Sequence record: LC592711.1 | Length of the DNA: 64,000 nucleotides | Direction: 5' to 3' (one strand) | In this document: piece after piece, positions 34,304 to 59,531 of the stretch | Numbering within the stretch: position 1 is the stretch's first letter | Layout: each line of letters opens with the position of its first letter | The notes under the pieces: generated by a model | What the model was told of the DNA's origin: nothing | The model's input: the letters and a program-made list of their open reading frames with translations, nothing else | Databases searched by the model: none | Translations under genes and position numbers: made by a program

Positions 34304-35554
34304 TTACGGTTGAAGCGAGTCGGTTTGATCAGCAGCTGCTGCGCCGTCCGCATCAGCCTTCACGTCGGTAGCCGCCGGCGTTTGGACTTCTGCTTGAACA
34401 GCAGCATCTGCGACTTCAGCGGTCGGGGCAACGGCGGCGGGAGCAGCGACTTGTTCAGCCGTTGCGTCCACTGCCGGCGTTTCCGCGGTCGGAACTTCTG
34501 CCTGCGCTTGTGCAGCGTCGGTTTCCACCGGCGCAGCCGTTTGCGCTGCGTCAGCAGCTTGTTCCACCGGAGCAGCGTCGACAGGTGCGCCAGTCAGTGC
34601 TGCAGCCGTTTCCGGATCTGCATTCACTTCGGGCGTTTGTGCCAGAGCTTCGGGCGAGTGATCGACTTCTTGCGAGGTCAGATCCGCCGGAGCAGCTGCT
34701 TGTTCCACAGCGGGAGCTTCAGCTTGAGCAGCATCGGCTGCCGGTGCTTCCACTTGTGCTGCGGCATCGACGGCCGGAGCCGTTTCTACCGGTGCTGCTT
34801 GCTCACCAGCGGCGGGGTCGACTTCCGGGGCAGCTTCTTGAGCCACGCCTTCGTCGGCTACGCCAGCCGGTTGAGCTTGTTCAGCAGCAGCGTCTTCCGT
34901 ACCAGCTGCAGCTTGGGCCGGAACTTCGGCTTGTGCATCTGCTGCGGGAGCGTCGACTTGCGGAGCTGCGTCAGCCGGGGCTTGAGCTTGCGCTTCGCCT
35001 GCGGCCGGGTCCACTTCTGCTGCTGCGGGTGCTTCCGGAACTGCCGGGGTTTCCGGTTGTGCCGGTGCATCTGCGGGCTGTTCCACTGCCGGTGCAGCTT
35101 GTTCAGCCGTACCTGCATCCGTGCCCGCTGCCGGATCTTGTTCGACGGCCGGAGCATCGCCCGTCGGTTGTGCTTCTGCGGTGCCAGCGGTGTCGACCGG
35201 TGCTGCATCTGCGGGAGCCGCGTCAGCAGGTGCCGGATCTTGAGCTTGATCACCAGCGGCCGGAGCCGCGTCTTGCGATTGGTCGCCAGCTGCGATCTGG
35301 TTGTCCAGAGCAACTGCTGCTGCGCCAGCGGCTGCGGCGGCTGCCGTACCGTTGTCGCCCAGACCGAGGGCTTCGTTCGTGGTGTCGCCGAGCGGTGCTT
35401 CGTCGCTTGCCGGCGGGACGACCGGATGGTCTTCCTTCTTCTTGTGGAAGATGCCGACGATACGTTCGACCACGTGTTCGGGCAGGGAGGCCAGGGCTTC
35501 GATCGCCAGGATTTCAGTCTTCAGTTCATCGAGAACTTTGTGGATGATGCTCAC
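34304..35554 (-). CDS. highly acidic Ala/Pro/Glu/Gln low-complexity protein
   Basis: 416 aa, GTG start behind AAGGA; imperfect EVDPAAGE/APAVEQ repeats. Confidence 0.8.
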   Translation of the reverse strand: MSIIHKVLDELKTEILAIEALASLPEHVVERIVGIFHKKKEDHPVVPPASDEAPLGDTTNEALGLGDNGTAAAAAAGAAAVALDNQIAAGDQSQDAAPAAGDQAQDPAPADAAPADAAPVDTAGTAEAQPTGDAPAVEQDPAAGTDAGTAEQAAPAVEQPADAPAQPETPAVPEAPAAAEVDPAAGEAQAQAPADAAPQVDAPAADAQAEVPAQAAAGTEDAAAEQAQPAGVADEGVAQEAAPEVDPAAGEQAAPVETAPAVDAAAQVEAPAADAAQAEAPAVEQAAAPADLTSQEVDHSPEALAQTPEVNADPETAAALTGAPVDAAPVEQAADAAQTAAPVETDAAQAQAEVPTAETPAVDATAEQVAAPAAVAPTAEVADAAVQAEVQTPAATDVKADADGAAAADQTDSLQP

Positions 35555-35638
35555 GATTTTTCCTTGATAAGGAGTGTTTTAAAAGTACGGCTCAACCAGC
35601 AAAAACGTTGTTACTGGCTCATACAATTTCGGTCGATT

Positions 35639-36001
35639 TCAGTGCCAGATAATGGTCACGAAAGGTCCAGCAACGGCGAAGGCGAACAGCAGCTTGCATG
35701 CAATATGCAGCGCCTGATCGCCCATCGCACTGATGATCTTGTTTACCCGCAGCATGTCGATTACCCAATGCCAGATGAACTCCAAAAAGGCAATCGTGAA
35801 TGCTGCTTTCGGACTGAACAACCAGACTACGCTACCTGCAGCTGCACCCTGAATCAGGGCATGCATTGTCAGGCCATACCACCACGGGAAGCCAGGCACC
35901 AACTTGTTCTTGATGTCGGACAGGAATTGTCCTTGACCAGGAAAGTCGAAGAATGCGTGAACTGCCAGCAGGAGACCGAAGACTGCAAGGAACGTCGTCA
36001 T
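35639..36001 (-). CDS. DUF3307-family membrane protein
   Basis: LLAVHAFFDFPGQ, MHALI, HWVIDMLR, DQALH pattern. Confidence 0.8.
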   Translation of the reverse strand: MTTFLAVFGLLLAVHAFFDFPGQGQFLSDIKNKLVPGFPWWYGLTMHALIQGAAAGSVVWLFSPKAAFTIAFLEFIWHWVIDMLRVNKIISAMGDQALHIACKLLFAFAVAGPFVTIIWH

Positions 36002-36039
36002 GGTTATTATCCTTATTAGAGTGAAGGCGCAGCCTGAGT

Positions 36040-36384
36040 TTAGTTACCTAATGAATCCAGGATCTTCCGAGCCTCAGACGGTTTCCAACAATCCCGTCCG
36101 TACACCTGCTTCAGAAGTTCAAAGGACTCGTAGTACTCCGGATCCCACTGATCCTCAAGGCCGAAGCACGAGCAGTGTGATCCGTACACATCGAAGAATT
36201 GCTTCTTCTCATGGTCGTAACCAAACACCACCGAGGATCCAGAATAATCTTCGTACGTATACCCTGCGTACAGGATTTGGTATTTCGGATCATCCTCGAC
36301 GCTGAACGCACGAAAGACATCTTCGCGGCAATCAAATTCATCATGGAAAACGGGTTCTTTAGACAACAGGATAGCTTCAGTCAT
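36040..36384 (-). CDS. conserved phage hypothetical protein (GSHCSC motif)
   Basis: YEDYSGSSVV...YGSHCSCFGLEDQW, a motif recalled from many phage proteins; start placed at MTEAIL. Confidence 0.7.
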   Translation of the reverse strand: MTEAILLSKEPVFHDEFDCREDVFRAFSVEDDPKYQILYAGYTYEDYSGSSVVFGYDHEKKQFFDVYGSHCSCFGLEDQWDPEYYESFELLKQVYGRDCWKPSEARKILDSLGN

Positions 36385-36449
36385 GATAATTCCAGTATTG
36401 AGTTTGAAGGAAAAGCATTTCCCTAAAACACTCATTTACTGAACTTCTC

Positions 36450-36715
36450 ACTACTTAACCACCCAAGCTGCGCCTTCGTAAAGGGGTGGCCCGAGATCTT
36501 TATCGTTGGTTAGAACGCTTTGTTGAGCCGCACACCGTAGGAGGTTGGAGTATGCGCTCGAACTCGATCTCAAAGCCGAAAAAAAATAGCAGGAAGGCAT
36601 CTTCCTGCTAAAGGGGGAGTTACCCCGAACGTACCGACTCCCTTCACCACAAAGGAGTTTGCTGCCGCATGAGCGTGCTGCTAATCGAGTCGGTCGTTCT
36701 GGGCAAATCATAGCT
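36450..36715 (-). ncRNA. candidate small structured RNA(s): terminator-ended module plus anti-SD hairpin module
   Basis: ~290 nt intergenic gap with ACCGAC/GTCGGT and CTCCTTT/AAGGGAG stems, a strong terminator at 36579-36610, then a hairpin with loop UCCAACCUCCUACG. Confidence 0.4.
36579..36610 (-). terminator. intrinsic terminator
   Basis: 10-bp perfect stem plus T8. Confidence 0.8.
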
Positions 36716-36730
36716 ACAGCATTTATTTTT

Positions 36731-37240
36731 TTATAGTTCGACGAAGTCCACCTTCGGACCATAACGTAATCCACCCGACCATTCGCTGCTATCACGCAGC
36801 TTACCATGAATGGTTGAACGGATAATGCTTTCGCGTTGGGACTTGCTGTAGTAGAGGCGCGGAATATACATGTCGCATTCTACAGCGATATTGTCGACGG
36901 ACACCAACACTTTGACAGGCAGCATGTGATCATGACGACCCATGTTATCCCGATCGTTCAGCGCTTCAGCAATTTTCAAAAAGGTATTGCGCTGATTCGT
37001 GAGATAGTCATAAGCCGGATCGAACGGACCGCAGTCTTGTGCCAGTTGTTCGCCTTCATTAACGAGTCGGATACACTCGTCGTAGGAAATGGGGCCGATG
37101 GTTTTTAACCACAACGGAAGCATCATCTCGGCTCGACGCTTCAGTCTGTCACTGCCTGGACCACGATCCTCCATCAGGTCCTTCAAATTGGCTTCGCGTT
37201 TTTTCGCGATTTGGTCTTCTAGTTCTTGACGGGAAAGCAT
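36731..37240 (-). CDS. hypothetical protein
   Basis: 169 aa ORF in minus-strand operon. Confidence 0.7.
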   Translation of the reverse strand: MLSRQELEDQIAKKREANLKDLMEDRGPGSDRLKRRAEMMLPLWLKTIGPISYDECIRLVNEGEQLAQDCGPFDPAYDYLTNQRNTFLKIAEALNDRDNMGRHDHMLPVKVLVSVDNIAVECDMYIPRLYYSKSQRESIIRSTIHGKLRDSSEWSGGLRYGPKVDFVEL

Positions 37241-37242
37241 TT

Positions 37243-37932
37243 TCAGCCCTTGTAGAGTTGGAACAGCTCAACAATCAGTTCCCGCTCTTCGATATCGCCC
37301 ATCTCGAAGTCATTGTAAATCGTCGTCGCTTCCATGTAGAGATCATGGATATCGCCGTTGATCAACATACGCTTGCCTTTCATGGTAAGCGCAGAGACGT
37401 CCGGGACTTCTTCACCCTGCATCGCCATCAGAAGACGACCGTTAACAGGATGCTCATAAATCGAAAGCGGTTCCAGGTGAGTCAGTACATCGATACCGAC
37501 AACAATCTGCATGTCGCTATGGGAAGCACGAGCGCGTTGTACTGCCATGACACTCATGCCCAACTGCTTGAACAGCGCAAGCTTGTTGTACTGACGCAGA
37601 TAATCGAAGACACCTTTCATCAGCACGCTTGATGCGGGGTTATTCGCAACAAACGCCAGTGCTTCGAAACCATCCATCGACGGATGGACAAACAGATGCT
37701 GGAGCGGTACGCCGTAAAAGAACGGCTTCCAGTTGCTCTGGTTATCCTTGACAAACGGATGACCGAACGGACCAACGTGAATGAATTCCTGAAGCAAGAA
37801 ATTGACAAGCTGATTCAGTTCCTCGTTTTCAGGAGCATCGGGTGAACGCATGAACCAGAAGTCGGTGGAACGGAAATTGACTTCCCCTTCCATGTCATCG
37901 TAGCGTTCTTTGTGTTCAGAACCTAACAGCAT
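37243..37932 (-). CDS. hypothetical protein
   Basis: 229 aa ORF with GGAGG RBS. Confidence 0.75.
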   Translation of the reverse strand: MLLGSEHKERYDDMEGEVNFRSTDFWFMRSPDAPENEELNQLVNFLLQEFIHVGPFGHPFVKDNQSNWKPFFYGVPLQHLFVHPSMDGFEALAFVANNPASSVLMKGVFDYLRQYNKLALFKQLGMSVMAVQRARASHSDMQIVVGIDVLTHLEPLSIYEHPVNGRLLMAMQGEEVPDVSALTMKGKRMLINGDIHDLYMEATTIYNDFEMGDIEERELIVELFQLYKG

Positions 37933-38012
37933 AGGCCCTCCAATTAAATAGCCAACTGATTAGTGCCGGCATTAGAAAAAAAGATCCCGTCGTACTGACC
38001 GGGATCGAATCT

Positions 38013-59515: not shown

Positions 59516-59531
59516 ATGATATATCGGTATA
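59516..59531 (-). promoter_or_regulatory. putative early promoter upstream of nvRNAP beta' N-half
   Basis: GATATATCAT about 55 nt before the re-assigned start. Confidence 0.5.

Follow-up and report, generated by a model that had tools for sequence, protein, structure and literature searches.

In Burkholderia phage FLC6, directly after an intrinsic terminator and ahead of the next gene, the minus strand carries a sequence of about 90 nt whose consensus fold is a three-way junction with an accessible, C-rich apical loop. As judged from comparative analysis, this junction is a new RNA family restricted to the genus Chiangmaivirus, and it sits within a known type of jumbo-phage leader architecture. 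In the explanation that we favour, to which we give a probability of roughly 0.55 as a whole, the role of the loop in pairing included, the junction would be a leader module of read-through transcripts whose apical loop recognizes a Shine-Dalgarno (SD)-type sequence, with the ribosome binding site (RBS) of a phage RNA polymerase gene, gp237, as the best candidate partner.

The window, by which we mean the whole 64-kb stretch of DNA analysed here, is the final part of the genome of FLC6 (LC592711.1), a phiKZ-like Chiangmaivirus jumbo phage of 227 kb. Window positions equal the LC592711.1 record position minus 163105, and genome-wide FLC6 scans used the complete 227-kb sequence from the public record. 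The locus falls inside a 346-nt gap without an annotated gene, between gp215 and gp214, where the neighbouring genes are all on the minus strand. The order within the gap is fixed: a promoter-like block is followed by a structured RNA of about 130 nt with a C/U-rich linker, the terminator, the three-way junction and the next gene (gp214 in FLC6; where a relative lacks gp214, the DUF3307 gene). The features of the locus are as follows.

37240-36731, minus strand: gp215 (annotation), the upstream border of the gap
36734-36701, minus strand: promoter-like block, made up of an A-run plus TAA, about 10 variable nt and TATG (36712-36709), then the start of RNA-A
36709-36579, minus strand: RNA-A, a predicted sRNA-like unit of about 130 nt, its start placed solely by the TATG motif
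36610-36579, minus strand: intrinsic terminator with a 10-bp stem, a 4-nt loop and eight U, directly upstream of the junction
36577-36488, minus strand: three-way-junction RNA of about 90 nt, consensus fold of 29 pairs (covariance model R1)
36384-36040, minus strand: gp214 (annotation), the first downstream gene in FLC6 and a present/absent cassette among relatives
36001-35639, minus strand: gp213, DUF3307 membrane protein (Pfam PF11750 and phrog_2470)

Our alignment of the gap covers nine Chiangmaivirus phages (FLC6, FLC4-4C, FLC4-5C, FLC8, FLC4-11C, RSL2, RsoM3USA, RSF1 and SURPRISE13). It contains two strongly conserved blocks with the terminator between them, the second of which holds the hairpin that a preliminary description of this DNA had singled out. 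That minus-strand stem-loop does form, at 36556-36529 with a loop of 12-14 nt, and it corresponds to helix P2 of the consensus fold, the parts of which are listed here.

36577-36566 with 36498-36488, minus strand: P1, the outer closing helix, 11 pairs, two of them with compensatory double changes
36563-36522, minus strand: P2, a long bulged hairpin, 14 pairs, 96.9% of cells paired
36548-36537, minus strand: the P2 apical loop CCAACCUCCUAC, its core CCAACCUCC invariant in seven distinct sequences
36517-36504, minus strand: P3, a short hairpin of 4 pairs whose loop varies, all cells paired (100%), compensatory double changes in two pairs

When the seven distinct sequences are aligned by fitting to the covariance model, standard pairs make up 96.6% of the 203 pair cells. 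Five pairs changed on both sides and yet were kept, a count reached by none of 500 column shuffles, and sliding the helix partners by 1-3 columns as a control left pairing at only 29-40%. The double changes in P1 convert C-G to U-A in RsoM3USA and G-C to A-U in SURPRISE13, and in the latter phage the apical stem of P2 has been rebuilt, with one double change. The junction strands GA, AAAG and AUAWA are unpaired and without variation across the same seven sequences. Taken by itself, the single sequence has an unremarkable fold energy (z = -1.2), and the covariation comes from a base that is thin though clean, amounting to only about five independent lineages. By these comparisons the structure is real and beyond chance. 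Its strand can be read from the 24 G-U cells: because the identical helices read on the plus strand fall to 85.2% pairing, the folded strand is the minus strand, as for the genes. That such an RNA fold exists, and in this orientation, is on this evidence highly probable. A longer arm that had been proposed to enclose the hairpin (GCUUUG/CAAAGC) fared differently, with only 35 of 42 cells paired; every substitution in the relatives breaks it, and the substitutions that do so are compensated within P1.

Indels of 1 and 4 nt among the relatives break every frame, and hence the region is not coding on either strand; they rule out a 118-aa minus-strand ORF (36451-36807) that we had considered. The 77-aa CDS annotated as gp216 in FLC4-5C, which runs over the junction and terminator, is probably spurious as well, its frame being opened solely by lineage-specific 1-nt indels and missing from all relatives. 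The plus strand carries the features that had been put forward as a competing explanation, namely an SD-like AGGAGGT run and, after a spacer of 6 nt, the ATG of a 19-aa ORF (MRSNSISKPKKNSRKASSC, 36552-36611). Were this small ORF with its own strong RBS the functional unit, the conservation of its first six residues in all relatives would fit, yet these six are what the relatives have in common: the length ranges from 11 to 50 aa, the frame past the A-run is not maintained, and the sequence is just as conserved upstream of the start codon. Moreover, substitutions inside the ORF are compensated outside it, in the other strand of P1, the G-U pairs point to the minus strand, and the ORF stands opposite to all its neighbours with no plus-strand promoter-like site upstream. 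We reject it as an explanation of the locus and regard it as exceedingly improbable that the ORF is the functional unit.

Covariance model R1 recovers exactly one copy per genome in five complete Chiangmaivirus genomes, which represent five lineages, and has no match in six more distant jumbo phages (FLC9, RP12, Xoo-sp14, FLC1-1B, RTH11 and phiKZ). Rfam yielded no match at E <= 10 in 35800-37300, none at the gathering score across the whole window, and only chance-level matches in a permissive search of four relatives; a tRNA/tmRNA scan likewise found none. Among the 39 loci returned by a pattern scan of IMG/VR, the only true homologues were those of RSL2 and RSF1, the others being unrelated coding sequences. 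A stricter two-gap pattern gave 0 matches in metagenome contigs, and a protein-anchored search with gp215 led to Chiangmaivirus only. The element shares three helices and conserved unpaired junction bases with the hammerhead and other Rfam three-way junctions, but its junction strands GA / AAAG / AUAWA lack the CUGANGA and GAAA cores of the hammerhead. The family is unannotated and, even if the proposed pairing fails, deserves to be annotated in the genomes of FLC6, RSL2, RSF1 and their relatives.

The terminator, which had been described as strong and as adjoining the hairpin, was recovered by a terminator scan as a stem-loop at 36610-36587 followed by eight T at 36586-36579. It is present in all relatives, with RSF1 and SURPRISE13 carrying a different hairpin plus U-run in its place. 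Upstream of it, RNA-A comprises a closing stem (GCCCAGAACG/CGUUC..GGG), inner hairpins, the C/U-rich single-stranded linker and the terminator, the 5' end GCCCAGAACG being predicted to pair with the segment just before linker and terminator. This architecture is predicted alike in five lineages although the inner sequence diverges, and 36709-36579 has the appearance of a small transcription unit, about 130 nt long. The linker reads CUCCCCCUUU in FLC6 and CACCUCUUU in RSF1, the latter resembling the 16S rRNA 3' end. A pseudoknot between the apical loop of the junction and GGGAGU of the upstream RNA was also considered and set aside, as it is conserved in the FLC6 type alone.

The promoter-like block is conserved in all nine phages, even where extra genes are inserted upstream, and we consider 36734-36701 a candidate promoter. 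A TATG overlapping the start is the core of phiKZ late promoters (PMC7598289). Further copies of the block or of its parts were absent from the FLC6 genome, and this uniqueness counts against the explanation favoured here. The block resembles only loosely the motif ATATATCAT found upstream of RNA polymerase genes, and in k-mer counts for promoter motifs coding repeats dominate. The motif ATATATCAT itself occurs on the minus strand behind an A/T-rich tract, upstream of the RNA polymerase subunit genes gp237, gp224 and gp124/123 and of a few others (window positions 59524, 52439 and 47271; record positions 148127, 123186 and 111851; all minus strand). A second minus-strand motif, GATATATTAC, precedes at least six other genes, and both may be regarded as candidate phage promoter classes.

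An arrangement of this type has been mapped in other phages. In phiKZ, 17 candidate ncRNAs derived from 5'UTRs arise by premature termination and exist in short and read-through forms (Putzeys et al. 2024, PMC10914365), and 201phi2-1 has similar 5'UTR premature-termination units (PMC11512511). In both phages, such a unit consists of a start site and a terminator within 250 nt in the leader of a gene; its short RNA is abundant, its read-through mRNA rarer (PMC10914365, PMC11512511). One of the phiKZ ncRNAs is a 141-nt RNA upstream of PHIKZ302 (PMC10914365), and inspection of its sequence showed that its apical loops are likewise C/U-rich. FLC6, which belongs with phiKZ and 201phi2-1 to the phiKZ-like, nucleus-forming jumbo phages, would share their combination of a start site (a predicted one in FLC6), a short structured RNA and a leader terminator. 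The differences are equally clear. There is no similarity by sequence or model, R1 having no match in phiKZ; the FLC6 hairpin lies after the terminator, so that read-through RNA would contain it and the short RNA would not; and FLC6 has a three-way junction, known from its sequence, where phiKZ has tandem hairpins in mapped transcripts. A parallel comparison within phiKZ, of the C-rich loops of the 141-nt RNA with the RBS of gp55, gave no clear match. To our knowledge, none of the small RNAs mapped in the nucleus-forming jumbo phages phiKZ and 201phi2-1 has a known function or target.

The position of the junction relative to these signals bears directly on what kind of RNA it can belong to. 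P1 begins 1-2 nt past the U-run of the terminator, which leaves no space for a separate promoter there, and the only promoter-like block available to the junction is the one 130 nt upstream, ahead of the terminator. A scan between the junction and the next gene found no terminator-like site. The gp214 cassette is present in five of the aligned phages (FLC6, FLC4-4C, FLC4-5C, RsoM3USA and RSF1) and absent from the other four (RSL2, FLC8, FLC4-11C and SURPRISE13), and in these four the RBS of the next gene (DUF3307) follows about 10-30 nt after the junction. The junction is retained whichever gene comes downstream. Because it stands after a terminator, has no terminator of its own and precedes the next gene, the junction is by position a leader module of read-through transcripts; judged in this way, it would be a post-terminator leader element and not a stand-alone sRNA gene.

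Contigs assembled from RNA libraries are compatible with this reading. Four root-metatranscriptome runs of one study contain contigs from a Chiangmaivirus relative about 93-96% identical; when these were compared with 35000-38000, one contig spans 36270-36631, continues with 44 nt of a divergent version of the upstream RNA, and covers the gp214 start, the junction and the terminator. Such a contig fits a read-through RNA, with the proviso that assembled contigs carry no strand, ends or level and may include DNA. Several soil metagenomes also contain part of 35000-38000. In another run, a contig of a related phage ends near 36483. We considered this end as a start site and rejected it, because genomes with and without gp214 diverge at this point, and the contig end is explained as an assembly branch point. 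The same end might otherwise have suggested an element acting at the level of DNA, for example a site bound by a protein or a promoter driving the genes downstream, in which the hairpin would play no part. The location, past a terminator and ahead of the next gene, is likewise one in which to expect a promoter. Such an element would be unlike the AT-rich motifs upstream of other genes, and the compensatory changes and strand-specific G-U pairs speak for selection on an RNA fold, and we hold a DNA-level element to be very improbable.

In the explanation that we favour, transcription would start from the promoter-like block and reach the leader terminator after about 130 nt of RNA. Most transcripts would stop there and a minority would read through, as in the units of phiKZ and 201phi2-1. 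The junction would then be present only in the read-through transcripts, as a folded module heading the downstream mRNA. Its apical loop would be the working part, pairing with an SD-type sequence, for which the unusually strong RBS of gp237 is the best candidate. The invariance of the loop could equally reflect a protein-binding site; the downstream genes differ between phages, and we found no functional link between them and the junction.

The candidate partner and the site within it are as follows.

59472-59462, minus strand: loop-complementary site, covering the SD and the A of the AUG of gp237; best duplex in FLC6
59462-57831, minus strand: gp237 (FLC6_gp237), the candidate target, RNA polymerase beta-prime-like (annotation, Pfam and phrog)

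An 11-mer of the hairpin (36549-36539) had been reported to be the exact complement of this site, and it is. The assignment of the target to a non-virion RNA polymerase (nvRNAP) subunit was also reasonable: gp237 has an Rpb1 domain-2 signature (Pfam RNA_pol_Rpb1_2), it matches phrog_2987, an RNA polymerase beta subunit, and the phage Noxifer homologue carries the annotation non-virion RNAP beta-prime. In the 227-kb FLC6 genome, the 11-nt match is the unique longest one, with a runner-up of 9 nt, and chance alone would be expected to produce about 0.5 such matches anywhere in the genome. Only about 10 of the 241 annotated FLC6 genes are preceded by a full GGAGG, and the chance that one of these would extend to 11 nt is, by a rough estimate, about 0.01-0.02, for a match that was found post hoc and of which 7 of the 11 nt follow from generic SD/anti-SD likeness. 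The strongest GGAGG sites in FLC6 are those of gp237 (AAGGAGGU) and gp137 (GAGGAGGUU).

Energetically, pairing would be favourable. A genome-wide ranking, which had been suggested as a check, placed the gp237 RBS first among 8219 start-like sites in FLC6, with a duplex of -21.0 kcal/mol. The loop has an unpaired probability of about 0.9 and costs 0.2-1.6 kcal/mol to open, the gp237 target costs 1.7 kcal/mol, and a duplex of about -19 kcal/mol set against a combined opening cost of 3.3 kcal/mol is still favourable on balance. The CCAA part of the loop, which is not generic, is invariant, and its counterpart in the target, the UUGG spacer, persists in five of the six aligned sequences (five lineages). 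Across these lineages, the gp237 site fares as listed below.

FLC6: rank 1; no change
RSF1: rank 1-2; pairing positions unchanged
RsoM3USA: rank 1-2; one loop-flank base differs, target the same
SURPRISE13: rank 9; one loop-flank base differs, target the same
RSL2: rank 18; U to C in the target core (GGAGGCUGG), loop the same

The 9-nt core of the pairing is intact in four of the five lineages. All three lineage changes (the target in RSL2 and the loop flanks in RsoM3USA and SURPRISE13) weaken the pairing, and none of the three is compensated, so that loop and target show no co-variation. Conservation of the site itself says little, because the entire gp237 leader is highly conserved. The link to gp237 is suggestive and is the best single target hypothesis, yet it fails the sole comparative test available, and that it is the true target we consider, from the sequences at hand, unlikely to doubtful.

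These observations also frame a trans-acting version, in which the element, set free or still within a longer RNA, would pair with the gp237 RBS, block the 30S subunit, and time or limit polymerase synthesis. The genome-unique complementarity over the SD and first AUG base, its top rank, the accessibility of both sites, the conserved CCAA and UUGG segments and the low chance of the extension all argue for it. They are offset by the uncompensated changes that take the RSL2 site down to rank 18, by the uninformative conservation of the leader, by the generic share and post hoc nature of the match, by the position of the element, which has no terminator of its own and no evident promoter of its own, and by the fact that only one of the several polymerase subunit genes matches. 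We regard pairing in trans of this kind as unlikely. The preliminary description had envisaged a phage sRNA that times nvRNAP synthesis; of this proposal, the conserved minus-strand structure, the accessible loop and gp237 as the best predicted partner have stood, whereas co-variation and a stand-alone sRNA have not.

Base-pairing sRNAs with C-rich anti-SD loops are known from bacteria, including Staphylococcus aureus RNAIII and RsaE and the mycobacterial 6C/B11. Each of these is transcribed independently, with a promoter and a terminator of its own, and multiple targets have been validated. The FLC6 element resembles RNAIII, RsaE and 6C/B11 in presenting an accessible C-rich loop complementary to an SD region, with predicted occlusion of the 30S subunit; in contrast to them, it has neither its own terminator nor an evident promoter, offers a single loop, is of phage origin, and has a predicted target. 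A second relevant comparison is the 3' end of 16S rRNA, the anti-SD, which reads ...CACCUCCUUU-3'. The loop contains ACCUCCU, the 7-nt anti-SD core, which would put it in competition with ribosomes for strong SD sequences, but unlike the rRNA it is a hairpin loop of a phage RNA and has the conserved CCAA extension that is missing from rRNA. Two functional readings follow these similarities. The junction might be a riboregulator of the nvRNAP beta-prime RBS, acting within the read-through leader or after processing, or, in a broader variant, an abundant mimic of the 16S 3' end that titrates strong SD sites, of which phage genes have few (about 10/241). Even taken jointly, we rate these two readings as doubtful.

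A serious alternative is a leader element recognized by protein. In this case the junction would be a module in cis of the DUF3307/gp214 operon, read by a protein or by RNases as an operator, a stabilizing 5' structure or a processing signal, and the invariant loop and junction bases would form its recognition surface. It would explain why unpaired bases in the junctions (GA, AAAG and AUAWA) are invariant as well as those of the loop, it agrees with the junction adjoining the RBS of the next gene in RSL2, FLC8, FLC4-11C and SURPRISE13, and the search for RNA partners found none that co-varies. At the same time, the element stays constant while the downstream gene differs among phages, and the neighbouring genes include no evident candidate for the binding protein. 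Pairing of the loop in cis with the downstream SD was tried as a further possibility and rejected as weak: the loop is only 4-5 nt complementary to the downstream SD regions, these regions form a local hairpin themselves, and the gene that follows is not constant. We consider a cis-acting module of this kind unlikely.

Whichever reading applies, the locus offers a compact fold supported by covariation, a candidate working surface in the invariant loop with its likeness to the 16S 3' end, and one concrete candidate target, the RBS of an RNA polymerase subunit gene that is the strongest in the genome. Should the pairing of the favoured explanation be shown, read-through of a leader would be linked to polymerase control in a setting where transcription and translation are physically separated. 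A riboregulator of the beta-prime RBS would, if true, shut off or meter the phage transcription machinery once later transcription units are activated, which would make it the first case, in a nucleus-forming phage, of a multisubunit phage polymerase under RNA-based control. FLC6, RSL2, RSF1 and related phages are under study as biocontrol agents against rice and tomato pathogens.

The surroundings of the junction hold some further features. An 11-bp inverted repeat (GAAGGCGCAGC / GCTGCGCCTTC, at 36467-36477 and 36023-36033) flanks gp214 together with its leader, and the gp214 product matches phrog_8792 and, weakly, a phrog labelled integrase. Further downstream, codons 4-6 of the DUF3307 gene contain UCCUU, which can pair with the SD of this gene (AAGGA) in a small hairpin around the start codon (35960-36010, minus strand); the hairpin is kept in both the FLC6 and the RSL2/FLC8 contexts.
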